The translations under genes were made by a program, and so were the position numbers. Of a DNA stretch of 64,000 nt, positions 50 to 62,064 are shown one piece after another. Origin of the DNA: Lepidodermella squamata (taxonomy: Eukaryota > Animalia > Gastrotricha); the NCBI GenBank assembly GCA_047495785.1, contig JBLDXI010000011.1, positions 372,001 through 436,000 of the forward strand, read 5' to 3'. Position 1 is the first letter of the stretch; every line of letters begins with the position of its first letter. Under the pieces are notes generated by a model. That model did no database searches, had not been told where the DNA came from, and was given only the letters and a program-made list of their open reading frames with translations.

Positions 50-1302
50 ATGTGGTTGGTAGCGCTATCCTTACTGGTTGTGCTATTGTTCAGGATGGCA
101 TCTGTCATACAGGGCAATATGAGTTTCGATGAGATCACACGTATGCATGAAATTTTCCGCATTTCGTGCCCATTTGCTTTTTACAAATGGCTGCCTAACC
201 ACCTCATCAACGGTAGTGAGAAATCTCCCCCTGGTACGGACACTGATATCATTATAGTGTTGCTACCACCCGTCAAAATTCACGACACCGCCCGTCAGTT
301 ATCGATCGTCCATGAATTCACTGCGACTTGGCATTGGCCGTGTGACATGGATGCATTCTGTAGAAATCTTGCGGCTGTCAACATAACGGAATGCGATTTA
401 AAGTATTTCTACATGTATGCACCGCTGGGCGACGTATGGTACCCGACATTCCTCCACGGCAATGCAGTTTCTGATCCTGCGGCTATAATGGGGTGAGATT
501 TACCTTTCATTGAGACTCAGTGATATTGATTCCCACGAGAATTTGTCCACAATTACAATAAAGTGTAACCATATTTTTCAGGTCGATTGTACAGACGAGA
601 GTTAAAATCGAACCATTTTCCGGCGTTTCAAATTGGATGGCATCAGGAAAGCTGGATTCTCAGTGCTCTGAAGTCGGGCAAATCTCGCGGTTCCCTTTCG
701 ATACCTTTGAATGTACCGTTGTAATTCTGCCATTTGGGGACGTTCGACTTTCGAACGTTCAAATAGATCCGATTTTCTTGGAAGGTGGAGATGTTGGTCA
801 CGATGGCGATGTTTGGGCTTTCCAACGGCTCAACTATTCGTTCGAACACTGGCACAGTTCGATTCAGTTATCATTCAAACGCAAACCAGGCTTTATCATC
901 CAAAAAGTCATCGTGCCCTGCTACATCTTGGCTGTTCTTCAGGTTGTAGGGCTCATAATGCCTGCTCGGATGCCAGACCGGCCCGTTTACAACATCACGG
1001 TCCTACTTGCATTTTTCGTCATTCTCGGCATGGTATTCGAGGCGATTCCACAATCGTCAGATCCAATTTACTTGGTTATTTTGATTGAAGTGAAAATCGG
1101 TATAGGAGCTGTTATAACTCTATACACGCTTTTCACCCTCCGTTTTGCTAAACGGGACCTGTCAAAGCGACCGGTCATGCTAATACTTACCGTATCACTA
1201 ACCGTCATAGAAGTAATGGACATTGTTGCAGCAATCACTGTTATTGCCTTATCAGGCATTATCGATGGAGTTTTATTCCACAAAATGATAGAGTTTTATT
1301 AG
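50..1302 (+). CDS. Divergent Cys-loop ligand-gated ion channel subunit, copy 1 (exons 50-492, 582-1302; 387 aa)
   Basis: Signal peptide; WYP loop A; Cys-loop CSEVGQISRFPFDTFEC; four TM segments with M2 DRPVYNITVLL; GG|GTGAG...TTCAG|G phase-2 intron joins the two ORFs in frame. Confidence 0.92.
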
Positions 1303-1647
1303 ATTTTTTTCTCTGTTGATTGAAGGAAAAATAAAAAGATTGTTGTTTCTATGGTCGACGTTTTGGTTGACGTCGATGAATCGGTCGTAGTTTGAGTGGA
1401 TGCCGTTGTCGCGGGCTTAGTTTGAGTTGAAGTTGTTCTTGTAGTTGAAGTTTTTGTTGAAGCTGAAGTTGTGGGCGTGGTTGATGTCGCAGCTGCTGGT
1501 TCACTCAGGTACCAAAAGTAGAAGCGGCTCACCCGGACCCACGCGAAAGCGTTGTCCATTGAGCGGAATGCATCAGCGTTGTTGTATAGATAATTCCCAA
1601 TATTTGGCAAGTTCATCGGCGAGCTAATGATCGCGTTCGCACCAGAA

Positions 1648-1896
1648 CAGACCGGCCCGTTTACAACATCACGGTCCTACTTGCATTTTTCGTCATTCTC
1701 GGCATGATTTTCGAAGCGATTCCCCAGTCGCCAGAGCCAATTTACCTGGTCATTTTGATAGCAGTGAAAATCGCGATTGGAGCAATTGTAACCTTTTACA
1801 CCTTAGTCACCCTGCGCTTTGCTAAAGGGGGCTTGTCAAAGCTACAGGTCATGAACATTTCCTTTATTTCCTTTACCGTCATCGAAGCCATGGACA
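1648..1896 (+). pseudogene. Cys-loop channel fragment (M2-M3 to start of M4)
   Basis: First ~59 nt identical to copy 1 M2 region; lacks 5' part; cut at 3' end by repeat DNA at 1897. Confidence 0.85.
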
Positions 1897-5028: not shown

Positions 5029-5030
5029 TA

Positions 5031-6382: not shown

Positions 6383-7747
6383 ATGCGAATTATTCAACTG
6401 GCACTGGTGATCATTGAGCTGATGGCTGATCGCAGCAAAGCGGATCTCAAATTCGAGGAAAGCGAATTGATTCTTCAAATATTTCGAGATTCTTGTCCTT
6501 ACGCTACGTACAAGTGGCTGACGAACCACCGATCAAATGGAACCAATAAAGTACCTATTGAAATTTCATTGGATTTATCGTTACAAGCGCCCGTCGACAT
6601 CCGTGAAATTACCCGCCAGATGGCTGTTCTATTGTCGATTGATGTAAGCTGGTCCTGGCCGTGCGATTTCGATGCTTTCTGCAGAAATATCAAAGCTACC
6701 AGCATCACAGAATGCTCGTCCTCGGCTGGTATGAACCTTGGTATGAAAGTATCAATGGACCAGGTATGGATTCCTGAGGTTTACCACTTGAATGCGATAG
6801 CAAACCCAAAGGAAATAATGGCGTGAGATGATACTTGGTTCCTTCCATCATTGTAGTTATAATTTGTGTTTCAGATCTTTGGCGCTGTCGCCCGTAGAAA
6901 TCCGCCCGTTTCTCGGCCTTTCGGTATGGGGTACTGCAACCAAGTTGGAATCACATTGCTTGGAAAACTCGGGCATAGCTAAATTTCCTTTCGACAGCTT
7001 CGAATGTGCGATTCAAATAGCAACAACGTCTGACTCAATCATAAAAGAATTCACACACGAAGACAACTTCGAACAATACGAAGATGTCAGCAATGTTTGG
7101 ACATTCGTACGCAAAAATCATTCCATTGGCGATAGCTTCATCGTTATTCAGTTGTTATTCAAGCGCAAGCCGGGATTCATCGTCCAGCAAGTCATTGTGC
7201 CTTGTTACATTTTGACTGTGTTGCAAATTATAGGCCTGATAATGCCTGCCAAAATGCCAGACCGGCCTGTCTACAACATGTCAGTTCTCCTAGCATTTTT
7301 TGTCATTCTCGGCATGATTTTCGGCGCGATTCCACCATCACCTGAGCCGATTTATCTCGCAATCTTGATCGAGACGAAAATAAGCTTTGGAGTTGCTATA
7401 ACCCTGTACACACTTGTGGCTCTTCGTTTAGCTAAGCGAGAGCGGTGGAAGAAATTGTCGCACAACTCGATTAACTTACACTACATATGTACTAATTGGT
7501 TCAAAGTTAGCGGCCTGCGTGCCCTTTTGAAACCACGAATTTCTTTTTGTACCAAATTTTTATACGAAAGTATATTTTTCGAAATAAACATAATAATAAT
7601 AATAATAATAATAATAAAACGGCTTTGAAGAAGTTTTCCATTTCATTTGGAGCCATCGACGTCATGGACATTGCAGCAGCGTGTTTTTTCGTAGCATTAT
7701 CTGGCGTAATCGATGCTGTCCTATTCAGTAAAATGCTCGACAGGTAA
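6383..7747 (+). CDS. Cys-loop channel copy 2 (exons 6383-6822, 6875-), disrupted by a 164-bp insertion in the M3-M4 loop; possible pseudogene
   Basis: Family motifs present; 52-nt intron; the original M4 (KTALKKFSISFGAIDVMD...KMLDR) lies out of frame after insertion 7455-7618. Confidence 0.85.
7455..7618 (+). mobile_element. Short retroposon-like insertion with AATAAA and (AAT)n tail
   Basis: Interrupts the alignable coding sequence; a second copy lies inverted at 8172-8309. Confidence 0.8.
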
Positions 7748-9505: not shown

Positions 9506-9603
9506 TATTCACAAAGAATGATTTATTTGAACACAACTAATTATAATATAATCGAGCGATATCGTCGTCATTTTTCGTTAGTTCATGTCCAAGATAAATC
9601 CCA

Positions 9604-10101
9604 CAGATTTGAAGATAACGAAGACGTTGGCGATGTTTGGGCCTTCCAACACTTCAACTATTCGTGCGAAGATAAACAGTGCTCAATTGACTTGTCATTC
9701 AACCCGGGTTTGATCCTACAACAAGTCATCGTTCCGTGCTACATTTTAGCTGTTCTCCAAGTTGTATGCCTGATAATGCCTGGTAAAATGGCGACCGGCC
9801 GGTTTACAACATCACGGTCCTCCTCGCGTTTTTCGTCATTCTCGGCGTCATTTTCGATGCGATTCCCAAGTCACCGCACCCGATTTTCCTCGTCATTTTG
9901 ATCGAAGTGAAAATCGCAGTCGGAGCGGTCATCCTTTGCACGCTCCGTTTTGCATAGCGTGTCCTGTCAAAGCGACTGGCTATGAAGTTGCCCTTTATTT
10001 CCTTCACCGTCATTGGCATCATGGATAGTGTAGCAGCAACCAGTATTATCGCCCTGTTGGGCGTGATCGACGGAGTTTTATTCTACATAATGTTTGAGTG
10101 A
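9604..10101 (+). pseudogene. Cys-loop channel exon-2 pseudogene
   Basis: DVGDVWAFQHFNYSCEDKQC...VIVPCYILAVLQ, then frameshifts, deletions and stops. Confidence 0.9.
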
Positions 10102-13265: not shown

Positions 13266-15261
13266 ATGCAATTGGCGACTCACTCTTTGCTGGTGCTGAT
13301 GGTGCATACGGCAATTATCAACGCCTATTATAGTTATGAAGAAATCGCTTTAATTCACCGAACGTTCCGTGATTCATGTCCGTTCGCTTTCTATAAGTGG
13401 CTGCCCAACAGGTTTTACGACAGCGAGGAACAATGGTTGCCCGAAATGCAGATAAGTATTTTCATGATACTTCGAGAACCCATCGATATCCGTGATACCG
13501 AACGCCAGCTGTCACTACGCACTGAATTATCTGTGTATTGGGATTGGCCGTGTGATAAAGACGAATTCTGTAAAAATCTCATGGCTGTCAACATCACAGA
13601 CTGCGCGGTAGATAGATTTGCCTTGGATGCACCCCTAGACGAGGTATGGTACCCGATTGTCAGCCATGTAAATGCTGCTTCCAGTCCAATGGCTATTATG
13701 GAGTAAGTTATATATCCTTAAGGGGCGATCTTGAGTCATCCTGGTGATCTCTCTGAATCTATAACCCGTAACCCCTGGAAGCTTCTAATATTGACTTTCG
13801 TGTTTTCCGTACTTGATTTAAGTTATCTTCTAGAGAGAGGTCATGACAACCCAAAGTCATTCCATTAGGTCACGATGGCACCCTAACCCACCCTAACTAA
13901 AGTTGGCTGATGAATATCCGTTGAGAATCGCAGCTTGAATTTTATCTCACTCTAGAACACCGGTTCCCAAAATTTCTGACGTGTATTACGCAGTCCTATG
14001 ATCATACCTTATAGGACACAATGAAATTGGAAATGGACAGAATTTATCTAGCAAAAAATTGATTGCTTGCCTTAATTGGTTTTTGGCCTTACTGGAAATT
14101 CAAAAAACACTCAGGTTTACGCGTAATTGAACTAGCCGTGCGAGCGAAACTAGGAAATCTTTTGAATTTTAAACTGAAAAACGGCATGTCACCTCCCACA
14201 AAGGAGACTGCGGGTTTTTCTAGACACTAGACCCTAGACCTCAGTTAACCCATTGTTTTCCAGAGGGTATTTCTAGCGATCTCGGATAAACACTAGTGAA
14301 TACACACTATAGATGCAATGGTAATTATTGACCATATTGAATTATTGAATTATTCAGTTCGCGGCCGTTTTACTCGGAGGAATTAAAGATAGGAGTACGC
14401 TCTATGCTTCGGGATTTCCAAATATGTGCCATTGAATAACGTGTACCACTTTTCAGGGCTATAATACAGTCGAAGGTCAACATCAAAATGGCATCCGGCT
14501 TATCTGAGTGGACAGCCAGAGGCAAGTTAGAATCTCAATGCCCGGAAAGCGCACACATTTCGAGCTTTCCATTCGATAATTTCGAATGCGCCATTATCAT
14601 CGACGGAATTAATTCAATTCGATTCAACAGTTTCGAACTAACAACCTCGTTCGACGATTCTGACATTGGTGAAGTTTGGACGTTCAAAGGGTATAACTAT
14701 TCAAGCAATTACGAAGGTGTATGCTGTATACAGCTTTCATTCATACTGAGGCCGGAATTCATCATCCAACAAGTCATCGTTCCCTGTTACATTCTGGCTG
14801 TGCTTCAGATTCTCGGACTCATCATGCCAGCTCGAATGGCCGACCGGCCTATTTACAACATCACAATCCTGCTTGCGTATTTTGTCATTCTCGGCATGAT
14901 TTTCGAGGCGATTCCCAAGTCGCCGCGTCCTATTTACCTGAGGATTTTGATCGAAACGAAGATTGGCATTGGGGCGGTTGTTACTCTATACACCCTGGTC
15001 ACACTTCGTCTTGCGAAATGGGAACCGTCAAAGCGACAGGTTATGAGGATGTGTTACGTGTCCTTCACTGGCATTGACATGATGGACGTGATAGCAGCGA
15101 TAACTGTAGTGACTATTTCGGCTATAGTTGATGGCATTCTGTTTCATTTAATGTTAGATCAAGATGAAATGAAGCACTACAATTCGTTGTGGCCCTTCGC
15201 TCAATGTTACGTATCGTTGTCAGTAATTATCAGTTATCAAATTATCAATAATATGCATTGA
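13266..15261 (+). CDS. Cys-loop channel copy 3 (exons 13266-13702, 14457-15261; 413 aa)
   Basis: Family motifs; in-frame phase-2 intron; extended C-terminus. Confidence 0.92.
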
Positions 15262-16271: not shown

Positions 16272-17485
16272 ATGACGCAGTTGGCGAGGAACTTCCAGCT
16301 GGCTCTGCTAATAATCGCGCTGGCATGTAGCAGTACCTTCGCGGATTTAGAGTTCAGCGAGATCGAGACTATCGTCAACATCTTCCGCGATTCGTGCCCT
16401 TTCGCTCACTCTCAGTTGCTGCACAACCACCGCGTCAATGGAACCACGATGTCGCTGATTGACATTGAAACGAGCATCCTATTGAAAAACCCTGTTGACA
16501 TCCACGAAACTAGCCGGCGGATGGCAATGCTCGCAGATATTGGCGTGGCATGGCGTTGGCCATGCGAAATGGATGCTTTTTGCGAGAAGCTCACGGCGGC
16601 CAACGTATCTGGGTGCCCATCAGAAGGCGAATCGAAATTCTACATGTATGCGTCGATTGACGAAGTGTGGAGTCCTGCGATTTACCACAGAAATGCTGTC
16701 TCCAGTCCTAAAGTTGTAATGGAGTGAGGAAAGACTTTTTTAACGCATTTTTTTAACGGTGTTTTCTATGGTTTTTTTTCAGGTCCATACCGCAGTCCAG
16801 GATGAAAATCTATCCATTCAGGGGCTTCTCATCTTGGGGCACTTCAGCCAAGTTGGAATCGCAATGCTCGGAAAACTCGAAAGTTTCTCAATTTCCTTTC
16901 GACAGTTTCAAATGCACTGTAGTCGTCAGGCGCAACGAAGTCTCTATCAGCGACGCTTACGTCGAGGTCCGTCTCACGCCGGATGAGGAAGTCAGCAACG
17001 TATGGATGTTCAAACAGCATAATAATTCATGGAATGCAGTCCGTATCTCTATACAACTGACCTTCAAGCGCAAGCCGGGTTTCATCGTCCAGCAAGTCAT
17101 TGTACCCTGTTACATTCTGGCTGTGCTTCAAATCGTAGGACTGGTGATGCCGGCTGGGATGCCAGACCGGCCTGTCTACAACATCACAGTCCTGCTCGCG
17201 TTTTTCGTCATTCTCGGCATGATTTTCGCGGCGATCCCACCATCACCGGAGCCGATTTACCTGGTGATTTTGATCGAAACAAAAATCGTTATCGGAGCGA
17301 TTGTCACGCTTTACTCACTTGCAACCCTCCGCTTTGCGAAACGGGGTCTGTCGAAACGACTGATTATGCCGGTGTGCAATGTTTCACTCACAATCATCGA
17401 CGCGATGGACCTAGCTGCTGCAGTTAGTATCATAGCCCTCTCAAGCATAATTGATGCAGTTCTGTTCTACAAAATGATAGAGTGA
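16272..17485 (+). CDS. Cys-loop channel copy 4 (exons 16272-16723, 16783-17485; 384 aa)
   Basis: Family motifs; 59-nt intron. Confidence 0.93.
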
Positions 17486-19464: not shown

Positions 19465-21151
19465 ATGAGTCAACTGGCGTCGAACTTCCCGCCGACTTTG
19501 ATAGTAATCATCACGCTGGTATGTAACATCACATTCGGGGATTTGGAGTTCAGCGAGATCGAGTCTATCGTCAGCATCTTCCGCGATTCCTGCCCATTCG
19601 CTCACTCTTCGTTGCTGCACATCCACCACTACAATGGCACCAAGATTTCGCCGATTGCTATTGAAGCGAGCATCATCTTAAAAAATCCTGTTAACATCCA
19701 TGACACTAGCCGGCAGATGGTAATGCTCTCGGACATTGGCGTAAAGTGGCATTGGCCGTGTGATATGGATGCCTTTTGTAAGCAGCTCGCGGCCGCCAAC
19801 GTCACTGGATGCCCGCCAACAGACAAATCGGAGTTCTACATGTATGCTTCGATTGACGAAGTGTGGAGCCCTACGATTAACCACAGAAATGCAGTCTCGA
19901 GCCCTACAGCTGTGATGGAGTGAGAATATAGACACCTAGTTTCCCAGGCTGTTTTGTATATTTTTCTAGCCATAGACGATGATATACAATTTCCCTGGCA
20001 GAAAACGTATATTGATTTTCCGATTTTCTCTCGTGTTGAAAAATTGATATTTTCTAGAATATCTCAGAACTTAGTAACGCTGTGAGAGAATTTTAAGTCC
20101 AATCAATATACACGCCCGAAAATTATTCGGGAATCAAAAAAATATCTGCCGGAAAAATTGTACATCGTCGGCACATTAGAGAAAAAACTAAATTAGTGAC
20201 TCGTATCCTCGGTTAGAGGGCCGCTTATATTATTCATGAGCAAAATTCCAAACTTTTTTGAAAGAGATACCTTTTGAAAGAGGCGACTTTTTCAATTTTT
20301 GAAATTAATTGAAATCAGAATAGGTGGAATATGGTGTTGGATGCCATAAAAAGTAGTCGCGTTCCGCACTCTTCAATTCAGCTCGAATAAATTCACTATG
20401 AAAAGATCGTTAGTTTCCTGTCTGTTACAGTGTTGTCTATGTTTCTAGGTCCATACCCCAGTCGAGGATGAAAATCTATCCATTCAGTGGCTTCTCGTCA
20501 TGGGGTACTGCTGCCAAGTTGGAATCGCAATGCTCGGAAAAGTCGAAAATTTATCAATTTCCGTTTGATAGTTTCAAATGCTCTGTAGTCCTCGGAGGCC
20601 ATGGAGGCTCTATCAATGACCCCTTCGTCGACGTCCGCCTTACGCCTGATGAGGAGGTCAGCGACGTATGGGTGTTCAAACAGCATAATACGTCATGGAA
20701 CGCAATTAAAATCTCAATGACTCTGACGTTCAAGCGCAACCCGGCATTCATCGTTCAGCAAGTCGTTGTGCCCTGTTACATTCTGGCTGTGCTTCAAATC
20801 GTAGGACTGGTGATGCCGGCTGGGATGCCAGACCGGCCTGTCTACAACATCACAGTCCTGCTCGCGTTTTTCGTCATTCTCGGCATGATTTTCGCGGCGA
20901 TCCCACCATCACCGGAGCCGATTTACCTGGTGATTTTGATTGAGACAAAAATCGTTATCGGAGCGATTGTCACGCTTTACTCACTTGCCACTCTCCGCTT
21001 TGCGGAGAGGGGTCTGTCAAAACGACTGGTTATGCGATTGTGCGATATTTCATTCGCAGTCATCGACTTAATGGACCTAGTTGCTGCAGTTACTATCATA
21101 GCCCTCTCAAGCATAATTGATGCAGTTCTTTTTTACAAAATGGTGGAGTGA
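19465..21151 (+). CDS. Cys-loop channel copy 5 (exons 19465-19919, 20449-21151; 385 aa), close paralogue of copy 4
   Basis: Family motifs; in-frame intron; upstream region also similar to copy 4. Confidence 0.93.
19971..20441. mobile_element. Intronic MITE (CATAGAC...GTCTATG termini)
   Basis: Short inverted ends; homologous to 27336-27868; makes this intron much longer than the 59-nt intron of copy 4. Confidence 0.7.
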
Positions 21152-34749: not shown

Positions 34750-35013
34750 CATGCAACGCAAAGTAATGTTCTACCAGGGACCGAAATGCTACTGATATCG
34801 ATAAATCCGCGGCCATTTTTCGAGGTACTTGCTCGCGCGTTTCAAAAGAGGCTCCCAAACTATTACATATGCAATGGCTCGCCAAATCTTTATGCCAATT
34901 TTGAGGTCACTTTGCTTCAACCAATCGAAATCCCGGAATACGAACGTCGGCTGTCGCTTCTCGGAGATGTATCCGCGACCTGGCTTTGGCCATGTGACAT
35001 GGCTGAATTCTGA
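34750..35013 (+). pseudogene. Cys-loop channel exon-1 pseudogene
   Basis: RLPNYY...LLQPIEIPEYERRLSLLGDVSATWLWPCDMAEF* with a premature stop and upstream frameshift; no exon 2. Confidence 0.85.
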
Positions 35014-35338
35014 AAGAATGCAAAATCATCTGCTAAACCGCATAGTTTGGATTGTTGAACGCAGAATTCACAGGAAAAGGCGTCATAAGGCATCAGAGAT
35101 TTCAAATCAACAAATGCACCCATTGATTTTAGAGTCGCTGGCGCTGGTATATTGTTTGCTTTTTCGCGATTTATCGAAACTATTCGGGCAGAAATGAAAA
35201 TTTGTCACGGTATTTGCTCGATTGCATTATGGAAAAATGAGAGGTACGACCGGTGTTCGAAAAAACTTGATTAAAATCCGAGTTTTCAATATAAGCTTCA
35301 AATTCTTTAGCTTTTTTGCACATAACAGGGAAAATCAC

Positions 35339-37176
35339 ATGACACGACTCGTGGAATTTTTCTTACTGGTTTTCATGCTAGTAGCTGTTAACAAGTCAGA
35401 TATCAGTTTTGACGATATCTCTGCAATTCACCGAATCTTCCGCGAATCATGTCCATTCGCCTTTTACGAGTGGCTGCCTAACCAGCAAATGAACAGCGCT
35501 GACGGGGCGGTTCCTTTTATTGACACAGTAACCACTCTTGAATTGTTAACACCCATCAAAATCCACGCGACAGAACATCAGCTGTCAATTATGGGCGAGG
35601 TTGTGGTGGACTGGAATTGGCCCTGCGACCTGGATGCGTTTGTTGAGAACCTGTCAGTGGCTGTCAACATCACTGAATCAACTGTTGAATCGCTTTTCTT
35701 CATGCAAGCACCACTTGATGAAGTTTGGCATCCGACTGTAATACACCGAAATTCGGTCTCTAATCCCTTCGCTATAATGGAGTAAGTTTCATAATAATAA
35801 TGTTTTTATTTTTCCTCTTCGGGACTGAGCGTCGTGTACCGTTTCCGGTTTTGAAGAGGGCGAAGGCGAGCGAAGAATGATCCTCACCCACCCCCACAGT
35901 CGAGGATTCTGCTTTTTGTATAGAATTCGTAATTTTCAATCGAGTTTACAACCATGCGCCATTCATCTTTTTCGAAAGTAACCGATTCCACTAGTTGGAT
36001 ATCGGGAATAATTTTTATCTCAAAATCCTTTTCGCCGGCATTTTTCTTATTTTCTCGTTTCTTAGTGGTTATATTTTAGTGGGGTCAATATGGCGCCTTC
36101 TTAAATTTCAAGCACACGATGCTGTTTTTTGCTGGGAAACGGGCATGAATGATGCATTTTTCATCAGATCTAAAATTAGCTCGAATTAAAGTGGAGTAGT
36201 TTTAGGAATGTGAATATTTTCAAGAGGTGTCTTTAAACTAGGACATTCTTAGCTCTGCGCATAAAATCCTGGTAGAATGAGCTGTGAGTGTAAGATGAGG
36301 ATCAGAACCAATTTTTCTTTGATTTTTCTAACTCCTTCTTAATGTCTCGTCATTAGTTCTGATGATATACCTTGCGAGTACAGTGAGGTATAATTATTTT
36401 TCGAGCTCGAAATTCCGCCAAAACAATTTCTGTTTTCTCATTTTTTTAACGAGTTGAACTTTTATTTTAGATCGATTGTACAATCGAAGGTAATGATATT
36501 CCTGTTTTACGGCAAATCATCGTGGTCAACAACTGGCAATTTGGAGTCTCAGTGCTTGCAAAGCTCGTTAATATCGAAATTCCCATTCGATAGCTTCGAA
36601 TGCGCCATTATCCTTGAGGGCTATGGTCATACGCGATTCGACACTTTCGAAATCATGGATAGATTTCAGCCGGATGAAGCCGTCGGAGATGTTTGGACGT
36701 TCAAAGGCTACAACCATTCGTGCCAGCGAACGCAATGCTCCATTCAGATGTATTTTCAACGCAACCCTGGTTCAATCATTCAGAAAGTAATCGTGCCGTG
36801 TTACATTCTAGCTGTGCTTCAAATCGTAGGCCTGATCATGCCAGCTCGGATGGCAGATCGGCCCGTTTACAACATAACTGTCCTACTTGCGTTTTTCGTC
36901 ATTCTCGGCATGATTTTCGAGGCGATCCCAGAGTCGCCGCATCCAATTTACTTGGTTATTTTGATTGAAATGAAAGTTGGTATCGGAGCGATTATAACTC
37001 TTTACACCCTTGTGACTCTTCGCTTTGCAAAACGGAGCCTGTCAAAGCGGCTGGTTATTCAGGTACATCATCTGGCACTGACAGTCATCGATATCATGGA
37101 CATGGCTGCAGCGATTACGATAATTGTGGCGTCAGGCCTGATAGACGGCATTTTATTCTATAGAATGCTACAGTGA
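35339..37176 (+). CDS. Cys-loop channel copy 9 (exons 35339-35781, 36471-37176; 382 aa)
   Basis: Family motifs; in-frame intron. Confidence 0.92.
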
Positions 37177-41000: not shown

Positions 41001-41534
41001 GCCGTTGTTACAACCGAATTCTCCCGAGGTGTCGGCGATGTTTGGTCTTTTCAACGCTACAATTATTCGCACGACAACTTGACATGCGCTATTCACCTCT
41101 CATTTCAGCGAAAGCCGAATTTCATCATCCAGCAAATCATCGTGCCCTGCTACATATTGGCTGCTATTCAGATTCTTGGCCTGATAATGCCTGCACGAAT
41201 GCCCGATCGTCCTGTTTACAACGTCACTGTCCTGCTGGCGTTTTTCGTCATTCTTAGCATGATTTTCGAAGCGATTCCACAGTCGTCAGATCCCATTTAC
41301 CTGGCCATTCTGATAGAAACGAAAATCGCAGTCGGAGCTCTTATAACACTTTACACTCTTATAACACTTCGGTTTGCAAAACGGGACCTGTCAAAGCGAC
41401 TGGTTAAGCAGGTTTTATATGTGCCACTCACAGTAATGGACGTAATGGACCTAATTGCAGCGTTCAGTGTCGTTGCTTTATCGGGCATCATCGACGGTGT
41501 ACTATTCGGCAAAATGCTTCAGCAAAATACTTGA
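38031..41534 (+). CDS. Cys-loop channel copy 10 (exons 38031-38452, 40826-41534; 376 aa)
   Basis: Family motifs; 2373-nt intron; in-frame join. Confidence 0.9.
38526..40302. mobile_element. Tc1/mariner-pogo-type non-autonomous element in the intron of copy 10
   Basis: TIRs CAGTGCTCCCTCG / CGAGGGAGCACTG flanked by TA. Confidence 0.8.
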
Positions 41535-42051: not shown

Positions 42052-43686
42052 ATGCTATTGTTACTGGCTCTAAATTTGTTTACCCTTGCGCCTAAAGCTA
42101 ACGCGGTATTTCAATATGATGAAATAAACCTAATCCACGATATCTTCAACACTTCATGCCCATTCGCGCTGTACAAATGGCTGCCAAATTATCTCAACAG
42201 TAGCACTTTCATGTCGATACAGGGCTTCAACATCCGCCTACAACCTCCTGTGACTATCCGCGACACGGACCGCCAGCTTTCGATCCTTGCTGAAGTAACC
42301 GCGATGTGGAATTGGCCATGCGATTTGGATGCGTTCTGTGGCAAACTTTCGGCTGCTAACATTAGCGAACCATGTGGAGTATTTGCTCAAAATGCGTTTC
42401 AAATGAATGCACCGCTGGACGAAGTGTGGAATCCGATTATTTACCACGAAAACGCTGTTTCTAGTCCTGACGCTATCATGGAGTAAGATAGATTTTTAAT
42501 CTATTTTCCAATTACTTGTTAGCTTATTAAATGTCCCTTTCTACCAGGGTGCGATCTTCGATCCCCGAGCTCCCGGGGATGAAAAATTTTTTTTTGCTGT
42601 TTTTGCCAAAATGACGAGTCAATTCGGCAAATAACCGAGCGAAGCGAGAAAATTTTTGAGATTTTCCACTAAAACACGCCCCAGAACATTCCAAAATTAA
42701 CAAAACAGTGGGATAAATTCTCATTTTGTTGTCTGGCCCGGCCGAGCTGGGGGGGGGATGATCCCCCCCATCCCCCCCTGAAAGTCGCCCACTGCTTTCC
42801 ACAAAAGGTTGTTTGTACCCCAAAAAAATTAGGGCCCATCAGAACACAATAGTAGGGTTCATTTTCGCTGCGAAAATTAACTAATGAGACATCGACAGTT
42901 AATTTGAAATCCCTTCTTACCTTTCTCATAATTAAACGAAAATATGTCTTTAGGGCGATTGTGCAGTCAAAGGTTCAGATTTTTATGTTTTCCGGGGAAT
43001 CATCGTGGTGGACGTCTGGCTTGTTGGATTCTCAATGTCTTGGAGGCTCGAAGATATCACAGTTCCCATTCGACCGCTTCGAATGCTCAATAATAATTTC
43101 TGGCTATAACGTTCGCTTCCGAGAGCTTCAAGTCGATCTTGAGTTTGAGACAGACGACGACGTCGGCAATGTTTGGACTTTCAAACGCTATAACTCATCA
43201 TGCAGCCCTGGGCAATGTTCAGTAAAGCTGTCATTTCAACGCAAGCCAGGCTATATTGTACAGAAAGTGATAGTGCCCTGTTACATCCTGGCGGCTCTTC
43301 AAATCCTGGGCTTAACCATGCCCGCTAAAATGCCGGACAGACCGGTCTACAGCAGCACAGTCCTTCTGGCTTTCTTCGTCATTTTCGGCATGATTTTCGA
43401 AGCGATTCCGCAAACTGCAGAACCGGTTTACCTGGCAATTTTAATCGAGACGAAAATCGTAATCGGAGCCGTCGTCACTCTATACACCTTGGTTACTCTC
43501 CGTTTAGCAAAGCAAGGCCTACTGAAGAATCCTATTCAAATAATGGCCATTTCATTGACATTTATTGATGTTATGGACCTGGTTGCAACACTTATCGTCG
43601 TGGTCACGTCATTCGTAATCGATGGCACTCTATTTTTCAAGATGCTCGAGTGGAGCGAACCTGAGGGTGAAGTCAACAAGTTGTGA
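42052..43686 (+). CDS. Cys-loop channel copy 11 (exons 42052-42482, 42954-43686; 387 aa)
   Basis: Family motifs; in-frame intron. Confidence 0.92.
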
Positions 43687-44306: not shown

Positions 44307-46158
44307 ATGCGATCACTTAGTAATTCAGGATTATCCATCCAGCTTCTGTTCGGCATTATATTAAACGCTGAAGCCATAATTCCTTTTGAGGATCTCGCCC
44401 TTATTCCCCTAATAGTTCGCGAATCATGTCCTATGGCGTTCTACAAGTGGCTGCCAAACTATTTCAAAGGCAGCAACGAAACTCAATATATCAGCATAGT
44501 CATTAGCTTGAAAACGCCGGTCGATATACGCGATACCGACCGCCGACTATCCCTCCTAGCTGACATAATGCTGCGATGGGGATGGCCGTGCGACTTGAAC
44601 AATTTGTTTTCGAAGCTCGCAGCTGCCAACATCACAAGCATCAAAGTTCTACGGGATCATGGCTTTGATATAACTGCTCCGCTGGACGAAGTGTGGCATC
44701 CGGCTATATATCACACAAATGCGGCCGCCCCGGGGGCAATAATGGAGTAAGATATTTATTCAATTTCACGTTTAAAAATATTAAACATATAGCAATAATT
44801 AAAATTAATAACTACTAGGTAATTCTCCAAAGTTTTAAGCGTTTATTCCAATAGAACGTGATGCCGATATTTTTGACGGAATTTATGAACCACTTGTAAC
44901 TTGTTACTTATCATCGCCTAAAAAAACTTGAAAACAGTTAGCACCTTATACCCTGACCTACATTCGTATAGCATCCTGCCCAAAATTCGGCCACTTTGTA
45001 GGTTATTCCTACTTTTCTAGCCAGGGGCCAGGTGAAAATTTACAAAATATTCGGCATTCGGCAAATACAGAATATATGGTAGTTATTGAGCTATCGAATT
45101 ATGAGCTCTGGGGTCATCGCTAGACTGAGAGAAGGCCGATGTGAGGTAACCAAGAAGTGCCGAATTTAGTTCGCTGCACATGGAAGAGCATGTCCACCTG
45201 GAAGAGCGAAGCCAACTAACTGAAATCGCTGCAATTATCAATTAGCTTGGCGATACTAAACAGCAAGCAGTACTGTCGCTCCAGAAAGTGAGAAAAGTTG
45301 TAACTCGTCTACTCATCATTTTATGAATCCGAATTTACGCGTACTAATAAAAATGCGAATTTGCGAATTTTCTAATTCGCTAAATAGATAATCAACCGCT
45401 TTTTACCTAACTCCTAACTCAAAGTCTATTGATTTTGTTTCTGATTAACTAGGTCAATAAGAGAAGCCTCTGCGGATATCGATGTATTTTCTGGCATCTC
45501 TAACTGGAAAAGCACTATGATACTGGAATCTTACTGCAATGAAAAGCTGCGAATATCGAAATTCCCGTTTGATAACTTCGAATGCATTATACACCTGCAG
45601 CTGTCAATGCATTTCAGTCATCATTTATTGAGTGTGCTTTTCAAGAAAGATGCAGATTTCAACAGCATTTGGGCTCTCGAGCATTACAACCTTACAATCA
45701 ACGATGCTTTCGGCAGGTTCTATGTAAATTTGTCTTTTCAACGCAAGCCGGGATCCATCTTTCAACAAATAATCGTGCCATGTTACATTCTGAGTGTTCT
45801 CCAGATTCTTGGCATGATCATGCCAGCTAAAATGCCAGACCGCCCTGTTTACAGCATCACTGTTCTTCTCGCTTTTTTCGTCATCCTCGGCATGATTTTT
45901 GATGCGATTCCTCAATCATCCGATCCTGTTTATCTCGCTATTTTAATCGAGGCGAAAGTAGGCATCGGAGCGATCGTAACTTTGTACACCCTTGTAACCC
46001 TCCGCTTGGCAAAAAGGCAGCTTTCAAAGCATGTGGTGATCAAAATAGCCAGCATTGATTGCACAGCCATTGAATTGATGGACTTAGCAGCGACTGTGGT
46101 CTTGGTAGCCTTCTCGGGGATTATCGACGGAATTCTCTTCCGGAAGATGCTCGACTGA
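44307..46158 (+). CDS. Cys-loop channel copy 12 (exons 44307-44746, 45453-46158; 381 aa)
   Basis: Family motifs; in-frame intron. Confidence 0.92.
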
Positions 46159-47530: not shown

Positions 47531-49102
47531 ATGGCTCGCCTCATCTCATCCAGCCTTCATTTTCTGGGTTTCCTATTCCAAGCCCACGCGCTTGTTCAGT
47601 TCGATGACCTAACTGTCATCCACAAAATATTTCGCGAATCCTGTCCCTTGGCCTTCTATCAGTGGCTGCCTAACTATTTCATCATGACAAATGAAACGCT
47701 GAGTTTCGACGTTTGGGTCTACTTACGATCACCCGTCGACATCCGCGATACGGACAATCACTTGTCCCTCCTCGGTGAAATACGGGCGCGGTGGGCCTGG
47801 CCGTGCGATTTGAAGGCTTTCTGTAAAAAGTTGGCAGTTGTCAACGTTACAGACTGCGAATTGCTGCGTAGCAAAGGCTTTTCGATGAAAACATCGCTCG
47901 CTGAAGTTTGGAAGCCAGCTGTGTATCACCGAAATTCAGCCTCATCTCCAGCGGCCATCATGGAGTAAGTGATCATTTCCATCTCAGATATTATATATGT
48001 CGTAGCTGTTGAAGCTATCGCTTGAAATGAAAGAAGTCGGGGCCCCAAGTTTTAAGCCATTCGTCATTATTGTTAAGCAGAGGTTCGTTGTGGGCATAAT
48101 CGGGCCAGATCATTGTTTATTTTCCACCCAGTTAGCGAAGTATGATCCTCGAACTTAGGGGGTATTTTCGATCCCCAATTTTATGACCAAAGGGTCCCGC
48201 AGTGGTTTTTGGGGATTTTTTCCACGTTGGCCTGCCAAACTGGGGGGTACGGTACCCCTCATTCTATACTTTGCGCCCTGCTTTAACCCGATTCACCCGA
48301 TTCGTATTACCGGGATACGATTGCAAAATGTATTTCTCTTAGGTCGATAAAAGATTCAGCATTGGAAATCCAAATGTTCAATGGAACTTCTGAGTGGCGA
48401 AGCACCCTCAAGTTGGAATCGTTTTGCCCAGAAAAGCTAAGAATATCGCAATTCCCATTCGATGCCTTCGAATGCGACATCCAGCTCGAACGGTCTGAGG
48501 CTGTATTCCAAAAGGTTTCATTTCATGTATTAATCAACAAAGACGAAGAAGATTTTAGCAAAGTGTGGAATTTTGAGCGCAAGAACGTTTCTTATGACAA
48601 GAAACAGGCCTCGATTCAACTGTCATTCAGACGCAAGCCGGGTTTCGTAGTTCAGCAGGTCATTGTGCCCTGTTATATTCTCGCTGTACTTCAAGTTCTA
48701 GGCCTGATAATCCCGGCTGATAAATCAGATCGGCCTTACTACAACATCACTGTACTCCTCGCTTTCTTCGTCATTCTCGGCATGATTTTCGAAGCGATAC
48801 CACCGTCTTCGGACACGGTTTACCTCGCGATCTTGGTCGAGATGAAAATTGTTATCGGAGCCGTTGTTACTCTGTACACCCTGGTAACTCTCCGTTTGGC
48901 AAACGGATGCCTATCGAAATACGCCGCCATCAAATTTGTCTACGTTTCGCTGAATGTCACCGACATAATGGACTTGGTTGCGGCGTTTGTTGTAATTGCG
49001 ATTTCGGGCATCATAGACGGAGCTTTATTTTACAAAATGATCGAACACAATAATCGCTCAATTTCTGACCTCTTTTCAGACTTTTTCCGCCCAGATGTTT
49101 GA
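47531..49102 (+). CDS. Cys-loop channel copy 13 (exons 47531-47964, 48343-49102; 397 aa)
   Basis: Family motifs; in-frame intron. Confidence 0.92.
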
Positions 49103-49878: not shown

Positions 49879-51077
49879 ATGGAGTTTTCTTTACTGTTTT
49901 CCACAGTTCTCGCAGTGGTGCATATCATTGGCGCTGATATGCGTTATGATGAAGTTGATTCAATGCATCGAATATTCCGCGATTCGTGCCCATTTGCTCT
50001 TTCCAAATGGCTACCCAGTTATCTTGCGAACAACAAAGACAATTTGATGCATTCTATTGACTTCGATATTGATATAAGCTTGCGAACACCCGTAAATATC
50101 CTCGACACTGACCGACGTTTATCAATCTTCGTTGAATTCAACGCTTATTGGCGATGGCCGTGCAATTTTGATGTGTTCCGCAAGAATCTTGCAGCTGCAA
50201 ATTTGAGCGACTGCTGTTCTACAGAGCTCTTCATGGATGCGCCACTCGACGAGGTGTGGAGCCCAACAATCATACACTACAATGCGGTTGATAATCCTGC
50301 AGCTATAATGGAGTATGATAAAAACAGCATGAAGTGATGCTTTGCTACCATTTCAGGACTAACAGGTCAATATTGCGGTCGAACGTTCGAGTCGAAATAT
50401 TTGGAAACGGAGAGAACGGCGAGTCTAGTTGGTCTAGCTCAGGCATAGTGGTATCTCAATGCCCGGAAAACCCGCAAATCTCGCTATTCCCCTTCGATAG
50501 CTTCGAATGTGATATTGTCTTTGTAAAATATTATGATAGCCAAATCAGATTGGCTGATGTGTATAATGAGTTTAGCCGAGGTGTCAGTGACGTTTGGACA
50601 TTCAAACATTATAATTATTCTTACGTCGACTGGAAGTGCTCTATTGAGCTTTCCTTTCAGCGCAAGCCGGGATTCATCACCCAGCAAGTCATCGCGCCCT
50701 GCTATATTTTGGCGATTCTTCAGATTCTCGGCCTGATAATGCCTGCTCGAATGGCCGATCGACCTGTATACAACATCACAGTCCTCCTGGCGTTTTTCGT
50801 CATTCTCGGCATGATTTTCGAAGCGATTCCTCAGTCGCCAGAGCCCATTTACCTCGTCATTTTGATCGAAGTCAAGATCGCAATTGGTGCGCTGATTACT
50901 CTTTACACCCTTATAACATTACGCATTGCAAAACGCGACCTGGCCAAGCGACTGGTTATGCAGGTGTTTTATCTGTCACTTACAGTCATCGATATAATGG
51001 ACATTGTTGCAGCGTTCATTGTCATTGCTTCATCAGGCATCATCGACGGAGTACTTTTCAGCAAAATGCTACAGTGA
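49879..51077 (+). CDS. Cys-loop channel copy 14 (exons 49879-50312, 50366-51077; 381 aa)
   Basis: Family motifs; 53-nt GTATGA...AACAG intron. Confidence 0.92.
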
Positions 51078-52469: not shown

Positions 52470-53835
52470 ATGGAGTTTTCCTTACTGGTTTTCGCAGTTC
52501 TCGCACTGGCGCCTTTCATCGGCGCAGATATGAGTTTCGATGAAGCTGATACAATGGTTCGAATGTTCCGCTATTCGTGCCCGTTCGCTCTTTACAAATG
52601 GCTACCAATCTATCTTAGGGACAACAACATTTACGTCGACATTTTAATAGACTTGCAAACACCTGTACATATCCTCGACACTGACCGAAGTTTATCAGTT
52701 TTCTGTAAATTCTATGCGGTCTGGAGATGGCCGTGCGATTTTGATGTATTCCATGAGAATCTTGCAGATGCAAATCTAACGGACTACTATTCGGCAGAGC
52801 TCGCTATTTACACGCCATTGGACGAAGTTTGGAGCCCAACAATCACACACTTGAATGCAGTTGATAATTCTGCAGCTGTAATGGAGTAAGCTACGTGCAC
52901 TGATGCTTTCTTTCCTTTAAGAGAATTATAAATTTAATTAAGGAAAATTGAGTCTATAAGAGAATTCAGTCTTCCTCATTTATTTATTTTTACGGTAACC
53001 GCAGACCGCCAGAGATGTTCGATGAACAATATCCAGCTTTTAGCTTGAACTGGTTATCATTATTTGAAAACCTTGTAAATTGTTAATCAATTATTCATTA
53101 TTCATGTATAAATCAACAATTATACTGTTAACTTGCAGGTCAATAATGCGGTCGAGCGTTCAGATCCTGATGTCCGGCGAATCATCTTGGTCTAGTTCTG
53201 GCCTGATAGAATCTCAATGCCCGGAAAACTCGAAAATCTCGCAATTCCCATTCGATGGATTCGAATGTGACATCATCTTTGGGAGCTTTTATGATTCTCG
53301 AATATTATCAGCTGAGGTGTCGACCGATTTCAGACGGGGTGTCGGAGACGTTTGGAAGTTCAAGCACTACAATTATTCGTACGACGGCGGTAAGTGCTCT
53401 ATTGAGCTCTCATTTCAGAGAAAGCCAGGATTCATAATCCAGCAAGTCATCGTGCCCTGCTACATATTGGCGATTCTTCAGATTCTGGGCCTCATAATGC
53501 CTGCTAGAATGGCAGACCGCCCTGTTTACAACATCACGGTCCTGCTCGCGTTTTTCGTCATTCTCGGCATGATTTTCGAAGCGATCCCACAGTCGTCGGC
53601 GCCCATTTATCTAGTCATTCTGATCGAAGTGAAGATCGCGATTGGAGCGCTGATTACGCTGTACAGCCTCATAACACTACGTATTGCTAAACGCGACGTG
53701 GCAAAGCGTCCGGTTATGCCGATATTCTTTATGTCATTTACAGTCATCGACGTGTTGGACATGGTTGCAGCGTTCATTGTTGTAGCTTTATCGGGCATCA
53801 TCGACGGAGTACTATTTAGCAAAATGCTTCAGTGA
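52470..53835 (+). CDS. Cys-loop channel copy 15 (exons 52470-52885, 53139-53835; 370 aa), paralogue of copies 14 and 10
   Basis: Family motifs; in-frame intron. Confidence 0.92.
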
Positions 53836-54990: not shown

Positions 54991-55666
54991 GATTCCCCTC
55001 AAAAATCCTTTCAGCTTTCAGAATGAATCACTCGCTCAACTAACGCGTATCAGGCAGGCCACATGTCCTACTTTCAGCGCTGTGGCAGCCATACGTAAAA
55101 GGCCAACGCGCAAGATTCGCGGAATATTTTCTCTACTTCTATTTGAGGGAGAACATATTTGCCAGGATGTTAATATGCAAGTCAAAGCCACGAACCAAAA
55201 AATTGATTTAACAAGCTTCCAGGTGTAGTGCGAATTCGCGAATTCGCGACGAACACATGCGAACGAGGAATCATTGCATTCTCTTTTTTGGTTAAAACAC
55301 TGACATGCGATTGGTAACACCATCCCTACTTCTCGTCTTTGGCATTCTAATGCAAGCGCAAGCGTATATTCGTGTGTTCGATGACCTAGGTGTTACTAAC
55401 AAAATACCGTAAAATCCGAATTAGAAGGCACTGCCCTATATTTGAAACAATCGACCTCGAACCCCTGCCTTATAAACGAGACCTGCCCTGTATTTCGGGT
55501 CTGCCCTATATTTTTTCAAATGTCCACCTCGCATTGTGGCACATGTGAAAATTCCTATTATCAAGGTCGCGAATCATTTTCGTGTAGCCACCCCCTGGAA
55601 AGTGACCCATCGCGCTCGAGTTGTGTCAACGAATAGCGATCATTTGTTGACACTCGGGGATTAAGG

Positions 55667-57169
55667 TTGGGGCGTTGCCGGATTCGCCTGTCGTTCAAAC
55701 GCAACCCGGGTTCCATAGTCCATCAAGTTATCGTACCAACTTACGTTCTGGCTGTACTTCAGATTCTAGGACTGATAATCCCAGCGAAAATGTCAGATAG
55801 GCCATACTACAACATCACAGTCCTGCTCGCGTTTTTCGTCATTCTCGGCATGATTTTCGAAGCGATACCACCGTCTTCGGACACTGTTTACTTGGCAATT
55901 TTGATCGAGTCCAAAATAATTATCGGAGCAATTACCGTAAATTGGGGCAAAATGGCCGCGGGAAAAAAATGACCCCCTGTTTTTTCCGCATTTTTACACG
56001 TTTCAGGGGGTCCTGATTCCGATTTTATAGGAAGCTCATTTTGCCCCAGGTTTGGGGCAAATTGGACAGGTGTTTTGGGGCTAATTGGCCACCCTTATCC
56101 TTATAATGGGTTTTTAATGTTTAGTGATTGTGAGGGTCGAATGGTCGAGTGGTCATCAGAACTTGTGTGATCTGATGAACGAGGGTTCGATTCCTCATAG
56201 AGTAGCATTTTTTGCGTCGCTTTTAATTTTTTAATTTCTTGTTAATTTACCTTTTTAATTATTTTAAATTGGTTTCTTCGTTGTTTTCGTAATTTTACTG
56301 CTGAATAAATTTTAAAACGTATCCCGAACAAAAACTGCCTGGGATACGTGGCATGCAATAATTTAAAATAATTAAAAAGGTAAATTAACAAGAAATTAAA
56401 AAATTAAAAGCGACGCAAAAAATGCTACTCTATGAGGAATCGAACCCTCGTTCATCAGATCACACAAGTTCTGATGACCACTCGACCATTCGACCCTCAC
56501 AATAACTAAACATTAAAAACCCATTATAAGGATAAGGGTGGCCAATTAGCCCCCATTATCGAGTTTTCCATGGGGTAATTTGGCCTCAATCACCTAGCCA
56601 TACCTGTGCATCGCCTGGGGTCGCGGTTTTTTCTGCTGTCATCTACGACGAAGATGGTCGAAGGAAAAATTGTCAACTTAACATGAAACCTCGTGATTGG
56701 CTCCAGGTAATTCAATTGAAAGGGGTCATTTTTACCTCCCTAAACTCACCGTTATACAACAACATGCTGTGACCTCATTTTGGGACATACCTGGCTAAAA
56801 ATTTGCAGGTTTGTAAAGGGCTTGTTGATAATCCTCCCGGTAAATTTTTGTAGAGTTTGATGTTGTAGTTTTAGAGCCATCAATAAAAATGTGAAAACCT
56901 CAATTTCTGGCCAATTAGCCCCAAAGGTTCATTTTGCCCCAAACGACGGTATAACTCTGTACTCTCTGGTAACTCTTCGTTTGGCAAAAGGGCGATTATC
57001 GAAATACCCCCATGTCGAGTTGCTCTCCATGTCCTTCAGAGTTACCGATATAATTGACATCGTTGCTGCGATCACCGTAGTTGTCTCTTCAGGTATCATC
57101 GACGGAACCCTGTTTTACAAAATGATCGAACCGAATGATAACTCAACTTCTGATACATCTTTTGAATGA
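55667..57169 (+). pseudogene. Copy-13-like exon-2 pseudogene split in M3 by a transposon
   Basis: ...KIIIGAI|ITLYSLVTLR... rejoin exactly on removing 55935-56951; 5' part missing. Confidence 0.92.
55935..56949. mobile_element. pogo/Tc1-type non-autonomous element with internal 194-bp inverted repeat
   Basis: Imperfect TIRs CCGTAAATTGGGGCAAAATG / CATTTTGCCCCAAACGACGG; TA TSD defined by the interrupted codons; arms 56077-56270 and 56360-56553. Confidence 0.9.
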
Positions 57170-60100: not shown

Positions 60101-60210
60101 TCGTTCACTTTACAAATTTCGCCCCATAGTTTGTCGGAATAGGTTCTGCATAGTTAATAATGGAACCATTATCACATACCTATAGTTTTTTCTCTGAATT
60201 GAAATTTGCG

Positions 60211-62064
60211 ATGTCGCCATTCAGTACCGCAATATTTCTTCAACTTGTTTTCGGCCTAATTGCCAAAGCTGAGGCAATAGTGCCATTCGAGGAGCTCACA
60301 CGTATTAATGAAATATTTCGCGAGTCATGCCCTATGGCGTACTACCAGTGGCTGCCTAACTATAATTTGAGATTTAAAAACAATCGAACTCTGTATTGCA
60401 ACATGGAAATGACACTGCGACCACCTGTCGATATCCGTGACACCGAGCGCCGCTTATCGCTCCTTGCTGAAATCTCGGTCAGATGGCAGTGGCCGTGCGA
60501 CTTGGTTACCTTTTACGAGAAGCTAACAGCCGCCAACATCACCGACGTCGCTGTGTTGCGTCATGATAGCTTTCAAATCACTGCGCCAAAAGATGACATT
60601 TGGCATCCAGCTATGTATCACAGAAATGCAGCCTCCTCTCCAGGAGCAATTATGGAGCAAGATATTTCGTTTAATGATTATGAAAATTTTGACTCTTCTT
60701 ATAAATTTTCTGACCAGTTTTTGAATATATTCAACGGGGATGAATCATCATGAAAAAACTATGCCCCGCTAGAATGAAAGCCGATCTAATTCAGCTTTGG
60801 AATTCCCCTCACTTCGGGAAATATAGGGTAGAAATTGCGTTTATAACACCAAATTATCAAAATCCCTGCCTGGTGCCTGAGAGTTTCCTAATTCACTGAT
60901 TTTCAGCATTTATCTAAGTTCATTCTCAAAAATCACTCGAATATCTGAAAAAAGCTGACCAACCAAAAGCAGAAATTCAAGTCAAACTGAAAATGAAATA
61001 GGGTGATTTTTCTGGTGCTGGGGAAAAACAGGCAAAAACTAGGCTAATTATATGAGCACAGGAGACTTTATTATAGCTAATGCTAAATATCCTAAATAGT
61101 GTAATTAGCTATATTAGTTCGAATTTCACATTTGTTACTTCAGGGCTTTTTTCGGATAGCAAACTCTATTAAACCTATATTTTTTCGTCTGGACAAATTC
61201 CTATGTTCTGAGGGCATGTCCGTGGATGTAATTTGGAAACCCAGATATAAAAACTGATGTTAGCCTCTAGGATTGGAAGCCTAACCTAACCAGTGCGGAA
61301 ATTTGTTAGCGAAATATATCAAGTAGCCATAAACACCCATCTGATGTCAATTTTATATTAATAGCTCGGTAAGAGAATCCACTGTGGCTATAGATGTGTT
61401 CGGTGGATATTCCGAATGGATGAGTACAGTAATTCTGGACTCTTACTGCTTGGATCATGGGCGAATATGGAAATTCCCATTCGACATCTTTGAATGCGAG
61501 ATCCAGCTAGTGCTGACTACACACAGCAAAATTAATCTATCGAGTTTCATCTTCCAGAATGGTGAGCATATCAACAACGTTTGGACCCTGCAGCAGTATG
61601 ACCTTAGAATCGACGAGAAACAGCTCTTTATCGCACTGGCATTCAAACGCAAACCGGGGTTCATAGTCCAGCAGGTAGTTGTACCGTGCTATATTCTAAC
61701 TGTGCTTCAGATTATTGGCTTGATCATGCCTGCTAAAATGCCAGACCGGCCTGTTTACAGCATCACGGTCCTCCTCGCGTTTTTCATCATTCTTGGCATG
61801 ATTTTCGAAGCTATTCCACAGTCATCGGATCCTGTTTACCTGGCTATTTTGATCGAGACGAAAGTTGGCATTGGGGCAATAGTTACTCTGTACACCTTGG
61901 TAACAAACCGCTTGGCAAAGAGGCAGCTTTCAAAGCGTGTAGTGATCCAAATTTCCAGCTTTGATTTCACAACCATCGAATTAATGGACGTGGCTGCGAC
62001 TGTGATCATTGTTGTCTTCTCAATCATTGTCGACTGCATTCTCTTGCGTAAAATGCTCGAATAA
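60211..62064 (+). CDS. Cys-loop channel copy 16 (exons 60211-60656, 61365-62064; 381 aa) with a GC splice donor
   Basis: Family motifs; both exons intact; donor GA|GCAAGA at the position homologous to the GT donors. Confidence 0.8.

Follow-up and report, generated by a model that had tools for sequence, protein, structure and literature searches.

Within the 64-kb stretch of Lepidodermella squamata (Gastrotricha) DNA analysed here (the window), 16 two-exon gene models (g01 to g16, all on the plus strand) lie in tandem between positions 50 and 62064, a span of about 62 kb. Our analysis shows that this array is an expressed, selectively maintained and lineage-specific tandem family of Cys-loop receptor genes in which the acetylcholine site has been dismantled and the intracellular domain is absent. 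We consider it probable that the locus arose by an old tandem expansion, specific to this lineage, of a cation-type Cys-loop subfamily that is compact and very divergent, and whose channels would be gated at the subunit interface with ligand specificities that differ by paralogue.

As predicted from sequence and modelled structure, the array proteins securely belong to the pentameric ligand-gated channel superfamily, within its cationic nicotinic/5-HT3 branch, since profile, profile-profile and fold searches agree. A profile of the 16 exon-2 translations matched nicotinic acetylcholine receptor (nAChR) chains in the PDB with expectation values (E) of 4e-14 to 1e-9, and 5-HT3A at about 2e-8. 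The spliced full-length family profile aligned with ordinary nAChR-like proteins over 265 columns (hhalign 99.9%, E 3e-31), starting at strand beta1 within exon 1 and reaching the end of M3, the third of the four membrane helices (M1-M4). The structure and Pfam tests used exon pieces, with the full-length relative P0006 as a stand-in for the spliced window proteins. The AlphaFold model of g14 exon 2 (predicted local distance difference test score, pLDDT, 86; predicted template modelling score, pTM, 0.79) comprises four helices (M1 102-124, M2 132-153, M3 162-189, M4 207-235) together with the latter half of the beta-sandwich, and in Foldseek it matched muscle nAChR chains with E 3e-9 and template modelling (TM) scores of 0.64-0.68. 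The PDB profile, hhalign and Foldseek matches thus bear out the initial annotation, which had placed the genes among the pentameric ligand-gated channels.

Each gene encodes a signal peptide, about 225 extracellular residues folded as a beta-sandwich and four membrane helices, with a linker of about 17 residues between M3 and M4. This linker length was read from the g14 model and the alignment is alike in all copies; typical animal Cys-loop receptors carry an intracellular domain of 70-250 residues at this place, which is therefore absent from the array proteins. The Cys-loop has the form C-x15-C with FPFD, both cysteines and the FPFD motif being invariant in all 16 copies, whereas the canonical spacing is 13. 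An extra cysteine pair (in SCPFA and WPCD) is likewise invariant, and a further pair is jointly present in most copies and jointly missing in five. Disulfides are predicted for C45-C103 and C109-C122 (alignment columns). In all 16 copies the stretch from the Cys-loop to the VW motif is free of Trp, so the loop-B Trp is absent; in the hhalign alignment the nAChR-like template profile carries this residue where the array family varies. The short loop C contains no adjacent cysteine pair in any copy.

The segment from M1 to M3 is nearly invariant across copies. The M2 helix reads D-R-P-V-Y-N-I-T-V-L-L-A-F-F-V-I-L-G-M-I-F-E-A-I-P, and the nearly invariant sequence DRPVYNITVLLAFFVILGMIFEAIP aligns with M2 of nAChR beta subunits, which gives Pro at -2', Asp at -1', Arg at 0', Leu at 9', Glu at 20' and Pro at 23'. 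In the Cys-loop superfamily, cation selectivity is associated with an acidic residue at -1' and with the 20' Glu. Charged residues are also conserved within M3 (E-x-K) and M4 (D). The hallmarks listed earlier for these genes (FPFD, VWxP, ITVLL, 20' Glu and 23' Pro) are all present in the alignments, and the acetylcholine-binding residues, namely the loop-B Trp and the vicinal loop-C cysteines, are absent in every copy.

The gene models were built from repeated plus-strand pairs of stop-to-stop open reading frames (ORFs), one of about 150 aa followed by one of about 240 aa, and the resulting proteins are 370-413 aa long. Although the initial annotation counted 16 complete copies, and 16 exon pairs are present, the reading frame is uninterrupted in only 15 of them. 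In g02, about 160 nt ending in an (ATA)n run have been inserted after M3 and before M4 and lead to a stop codon, and this copy is probably a pseudogene. An extra intron that would rescue g02 was rejected, as plausible splice sites for removing the insertion were not found. The inserted sequence (7455-7617) recurs in inverted orientation at 8164-8286 (-), about 550 nt downstream, which suggests a small repeated element or foldback. A tblastn search of the window with all models recovered six further relics, the same number of pseudogenes that had been proposed, and together with g02 they bring the broken loci to seven of 22, in line with the frequent gene death noted earlier. The claim that all loci share one strand is nearly but not wholly right, because one relic of 19 aa lies on the minus strand.

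The extracellular half had been described as variable and the membrane segments as conserved, which agrees with the median pairwise identities of 43% for the mature extracellular domain (ECD), 68% for the whole transmembrane domain (TMD) and 78% for M1-M3. Median pairwise ratios of nonsynonymous to synonymous divergence (dN/dS, or omega; Nei-Gojobori) are about 0.25 in the ECD and 0.15 in the TMD, and these sequence comparisons indicate that both halves are under purifying selection. Median dS amounts to 1.9 (ECD) and 1.4 (TMD), many pairs being saturated; the paralogues are therefore old, which does not support a recent origin. Variation clusters in four parts of the alignment, namely columns 59-73, columns 119-133, columns 209-238 (downstream of the Cys-loop and corresponding to loops B to F) and columns 248-257 (corresponding to loop C). 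Among the seven closest pairs, omega in these variable stretches is 0.4-0.8 (six pairs with estimable dS) and 0.2-0.4 elsewhere in the ECD, a pattern of relaxed or mixed selection. Pairwise dN/dS stayed below one, and this crude test gave no signal of positive selection, the variable loops included.

Two neighbouring pairs carry long identical tracts in genes that are otherwise 75-88% identical: 170 nt over M1-M3 in g04/g05 (17105-17275 and 20770-20940) and 110 nt from before M1 to M2 in g07/g08. These tracts are products of local gene conversion. Such conversion was rejected as a general account of why the pore is conserved, as it is confined to these two pairs; third-position differences in the TMD reach 20-50% in the other pairs, and pore conservation therefore comes mainly from selection. 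The same data bear on whether the array might be evolutionary debris, that is, functionless ORFs kept by chance or by gene conversion. The seven broken loci and the identical tracts would fit such an origin, but 15 frames of about 380 codons have stayed open despite near-saturated synonymous sites, at omega values of 0.15-0.25, the conversion tracts are limited to two neighbouring pairs, splice sites are conserved in all copies and transcripts are seen (below). We regard debris as highly improbable and as already disfavoured.

Relatives of the family were sought by an exhaustive profile search of 1.84 billion representatives, which returned 3273 matches; a single-sequence search with exon 2 found no match in a set of 5.8 billion proteins. 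Bivalve proteins were the best named matches of the exon-2 profile and supplied the only names among the 30 clusters looked up. They were rejected as subfamily members, being concatenated ordinary nAChR-like genes with an S-G-E-R start of M2 and a C-x13-C loop, which score high because several repeats are summed. The best single-domain matches (P0003, P0006, P0010, P0016, P0018 and others) are unnamed proteins from ENA/Logan metagenome assemblies, and on the sequence comparisons made here the close relatives of the array family appear to be unnamed metagenome proteins only. When the alignment of these relatives served as the profile, in a search limited by its word filter, the named matches were distant only (a frog 5-HT3A-like protein, a millipede and a nematode).

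These environmental short-linker proteins (the five above, P0032 and about 40 more) come from other organisms and are 22-31% identical to the array proteins, but they share with them a length of 360-410 aa, an M3-M4 linker of about 10-17 residues, a P-D-R-P/S start of M2, a C-terminal tail of about 105 residues counted from M2, the N-terminal cysteine pair (C..P...LP and W.PC) and the acidic M4 residue. Their Cys-loop spacing is mostly 13 or 14 and rarely 15, unlike the 15 of the array. The array family aligns end to end with the family of P0006 over 349 columns (hhalign 100%, E 1.2e-54), the N-terminal cysteine motifs and M4 included. P0006 is modelled as an entire channel subunit (pLDDT 89) in which nine residues link M3 to M4, and its best structural match is the alpha7 nAChR (E 1e-22). 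In a tree of 75 proteins the 16 array copies form one clade (Shimodaira-Hasegawa-like approximate likelihood ratio test, SH-aLRT, 100) whose stem measures 1.15 substitutions per site, with six environmental proteins as sisters (SH-aLRT 96), and all short-linker proteins together are separate from nAChR-like proteins of the S-G-E-R type. Neither this tree nor the database searches revealed orthology to a named nAChR subunit; as the initial annotation had anticipated, there is no one-to-one correspondence with named receptors.

The environmental members sit on compact, intron-poor eukaryotic contigs, some of them in tandem: three subfamily genes follow one another on L005 (10001-15047), and further tandem members lie on L001 (4103-5751 and 10001-11191), those of both contigs being intronless. 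Their neighbours include Sushi-domain, galaxin-repeat and Anti-LPS-factor/scygonadin-type genes; the last of these, found on one contig, may point to a crustacean as the source of that contig alone. The suggestion of a new family thus holds in so far as this is a deep, compact subfamily with no named relative, but it is also found on unnamed environmental eukaryote contigs and so is not confined to the array. In the literature we found no description of a eukaryotic Cys-loop subfamily that combines a minimal M3-M4 linker, a longer Cys-loop and an N-terminal cysteine module, an absence that is not proof. Lineage-specific nAChR-like expansions and nAChR-derived chemoreceptors are already known.

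A single phase-2 intron interrupts the identical codon in all 16 models, exactly as stated for every complete copy in the earlier reading; exon 1 ends in ...ATG GA|GT and exon 2 starts at AG|G TCG ATT, a Glu or Lys codon being split 2+1. Intron lengths range from 52 to 2373 nt, and the donor of g16 is GC instead of GT. A contig of another organism (L007, a Logan contig, 1-200) carries a 56-nt phase-2 intron at the same codon, while several other relatives are intronless; the shared position indicates that the intron predates the array expansion.

Transcription is seen in an RNA-like sequencing run (X2), which is labelled as a different organism and most contigs of which are at least 99% identical to the window. 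Coverage falls on exon 2 of g12, both exons of g13 and exon 2 of g14, and depth is zero across the intergenic stretches, so that coverage is confined to exons. One contig joins position 50312 to 50366 across GT..AG ends, which is the 53-nt family intron of g14, and the acceptor used lies nine bases downstream of the first candidate. The run shows transcription and splicing of a few copies, nothing beyond.

A motif shared by the upstream regions adds to this picture. The heptamer CGGATAT (roughly TTTGAGCGGATATGA) occurs on the plus strand 91-161 nt upstream of 11 of the 15 start codons, and GCGGAAATG variants precede g04 and g05. There are 20 matches to CGGATAT in the window against 7.05 expected, a number reached in none of 100 shuffles. 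Since the motif is conserved where synonymous sites are saturated, the sequence suggests a candidate common cis-regulatory element, such as a promoter or transcription-factor site. The hexamer TTTATT is frequently found 25-30 nt further upstream.

Our proposal for how these proteins work follows from their architecture. The subunits would assemble as homo- or heteropentamers conducting cations, and the channels would open when a ligand binds at the subunit interface; this ligand is predicted to be other than acetylcholine because the loop-B Trp and the loop-C cysteine pair are missing. The ligand may further differ among paralogues, as variation sits in the equivalents of loops B, F and C plus two loops near the N-terminus, while the pore and coupling elements are almost invariant. 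As there is no intracellular domain, the subunits would lack anchoring or regulation in the manner of synaptic receptors.

Several points weigh against this proposal. Current, ligand and assembly are predictions for the whole subfamily, drawn from sequences and models. The P-D-R motif combines elements of the cationic G-E-K and the anionic P-A-R motifs, its -2' Pro and 0' Arg resembling the latter, which makes cation selectivity uncertain, and omega values of 0.4-0.8 in the hypervariable loops fit relaxed constraint as well as they fit ligand diversification. The expression data from X2 consist of low-depth assembled contigs from a run whose type was guessed and whose tissue is unspecified. 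Exon 1 alone has no significant match in PDB or Pfam. In the proposed check with the Neur_chan_LBD and Neur_chan_memb models, run on single exons, where the intron splits the channel domains, both stayed below their cut-offs (the best of 16 reaching E 1.8e-4 and 3.8e-4); the PDB profile search was significant.

The initial annotation went further and proposed a chemoreceptor family in sensory or epidermal cells, with paralogues tuned to different external chemicals, in parallel to and independent of the cephalopod receptors. A tandem array in which about 30% of copies are dead, an ECD far more variable than the pore, the lost acetylcholine-binding residues and the missing orthology to named transmitter receptors are all compatible with such a role, as are low expression in the bulk RNA-like run and an upstream motif that suggests a common expression programme. 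There is also published precedent, since nAChR-derived channels can act as contact chemoreceptors. Set against this, the expression evidence is one RNA-like run of unspecified tissue, pairwise comparisons give no positive selection even in the variable loops, the duplicates are old and not a recent burst, and molluscs and annelids have large sets of orphan nAChR-like genes, of no known function, that bear the same hallmarks. Cephalopod chemotactile receptor structures were not among the best 60 PDB matches of the array profile or of its relatives' profile, and no special sequence kinship with them was detected. The genomic hallmarks would suit other roles as well, and on balance we think a chemosensory role unlikely.

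A role in internal signalling is somewhat easier to entertain, if still short of an even chance: neurons, muscle or epithelia would use the proteins as a lineage-specific set of subunits, perhaps co-assembling, that respond to an endogenous small molecule, peptide, proton or ion. To our knowledge, endogenous ligands, zinc or protons gate every characterised member of the nicotinic/5-HT3 branch apart from the cephalopod receptors. Purifying selection on both halves and the long retention of the paralogues point in the same direction, and the near-invariant M1-M3 segment (median identity 78%) would permit co-assembly. However, the aromatic box for amine transmitters is dismantled, an intracellular domain for synaptic clustering is absent, and so large an array, with so many dead genes, is unusual for core signalling receptors.

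The coordinates of the array members, the relics and the upstream motif are collected in the table. Other genes and fragments also lie in the window. A multi-exon M13 (neprilysin-type) peptidase gene is situated inside the array at 22070-24391 (+), at least three of its exons matching Peptidase_M13_N and Peptidase_M13. A reverse-transcriptase fragment (RVT_1, E 4e-5) at 54717-55040 (+) lies beside the split dead copy, and between g01 and g02 an ORF at 4557-4874 (+) has a weak, sub-threshold match to an IS630/Tc1-type transposase helix-turn-helix domain (E 0.006). An intact ORF of 370 aa at 11296-12408 (-), with a Pro/Glu/Lys-rich N-terminal stretch, has no Pfam match and no match in the search of 5.8 billion proteins. 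Rfam and Tandem Repeats Finder gave nothing in the window.

Table. Members of the Cys-loop receptor array, their relics and the shared upstream motif, with positions in the window.
Feature	Position	Strand	Details
g01	50..1302	+	intact; exon 1 50-492, exon 2 582-1302; 387 aa
relic	1650..1895	+	M2-M4 piece without extracellular part; tblastn
g02	6383..7738	+	exon 1 6383-6822, exon 2 from 6875; stop at 7628; M4 out of frame 7616-7738
relic of exon 2	9548..10098	+	frameshift, in-frame stop, deletions; tblastn
g03	13266..15261	+	intact; 13266-13702, 14457-15261; 413 aa
g04	16272..17485	+	intact; 16272-16723, 16783-17485; 384 aa
g05	19465..21151	+	intact; 19465-19919, 20449-21151; 385 aa
g06	25365..26587	+	intact; 25365-25807, 25861-26587; 389 aa
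relic of exon 1	27269..27337	+	23 aa; tblastn
g07	28060..29446	+	intact; 28060-28487, 28705-29446; 389 aa
g08	30274..33238	+	intact; 30274-30713, 32530-33238; 382 aa
relic of exon 1	34744..35055	+	with stop, first conserved Cys gone; tblastn
g09	35339..37176	+	intact; 35339-35781, 36471-37176; 382 aa
g10	38031..41534	+	intact; 38031-38452, 40826-41534; 376 aa
g11	42052..43686	+	intact; 42052-42482, 42954-43686; 387 aa
g12	44307..46158	+	intact; 44307-44746, 45453-46158; 381 aa
g13	47531..49102	+	intact; 47531-47964, 48343-49102; 397 aa
g14	49879..51077	+	intact; 49879-50312, 50366-51077; 381 aa
g15	52470..53835	+	intact; 52470-52885, 53139-53835; 370 aa
relic of exon 1	55080..55136	-	19 aa; tblastn, E 1e-4
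dead exon 2	55445..57154	+	degenerate ECD with stop; M1-M3 55682-55933; M3 end and M4 56951-57154; two parts (55445-55933, 56951-57154) split by about 1 kb of unrelated sequence
g16	60211..62064	+	open frame; 60211-60656, 61365-62064; 381 aa; GC..AG intron
CGGATAT upstream sites	6222, 13160, 25268, 27969, 30157, 37880, 44211, 47425, 49757, 52331, 60053	+	

Textbooks present animal Cys-loop receptors as synaptic receptors bearing a large intracellular domain. A naturally minimal eukaryotic version that has long been kept in many copies, of about 380 aa, braced by disulfides and with no intracellular domain, shows the nicotinic scaffold repurposed beyond classical transmission. The array family represents a superfamily branch that lacks annotation and nearly escapes the standard domain models, and its small proteins are possibly well-behaved targets for structural and gating studies. 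Should the ligands prove to be environmental, the array would represent a second, independent origin of nAChR-derived chemosensation, outside the cephalopods and in a little-studied animal lineage.

Compared with known receptor systems, the array proteins share with nAChRs (alpha7, muscle and neuronal) and 5-HT3A the fold, the superfamily branch, FPFD, VWxP and the M1 Pro, and in M2 the ITVLL motif, the 9' Leu, the 20' Glu and the 23' Pro. They are only about 16-20% identical to these receptors, and they differ in a Cys-loop two residues longer, a novel N-terminal cysteine module, the absence of the loop-B Trp and of the vicinal loop-C cysteines, P-D-R-P in place of G-E-K/R at -2' to 1', and the absence of the intracellular domain with its MX and MA helices.

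The cephalopod chemotactile receptors, such as CRT1 and CRB1, are nAChR-derived, clustered and devoid of the canonical acetylcholine-binding residues, and they arose by lineage-specific expansion; nicotinic-type channels, clustering, lost acetylcholine residues and lineage-specific expansion are common to them and the array. Cephalopod receptors retain the C-x13-C loop and an intracellular domain, and the array has neither. A sensory role has been demonstrated for the cephalopod receptors; for the array it is a proposal. Similarly, molluscs and annelids possess orphan nAChR-like expansions of 52-217 genes, for example Alpo4 of Alvinella, for which the ligand is not known. These resemble the array as large lineage-specific sets of divergent nAChR-like genes, but their M2 starts with S-G-E-R, their Cys-loop is C-x13-C, their intracellular domain spans about 100 residues, and they fall into a separate clade in the tree. 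The prokaryotic channels GLIC and ELIC share the compact size and the short M3-M4 linker of the array proteins but, unlike them, have no Cys-loop disulfide. The compactness of the array proteins is most likely a secondary loss, because the sequence and fold searches on which this judgement draws rank eukaryotic nAChR and 5-HT3 chains first.

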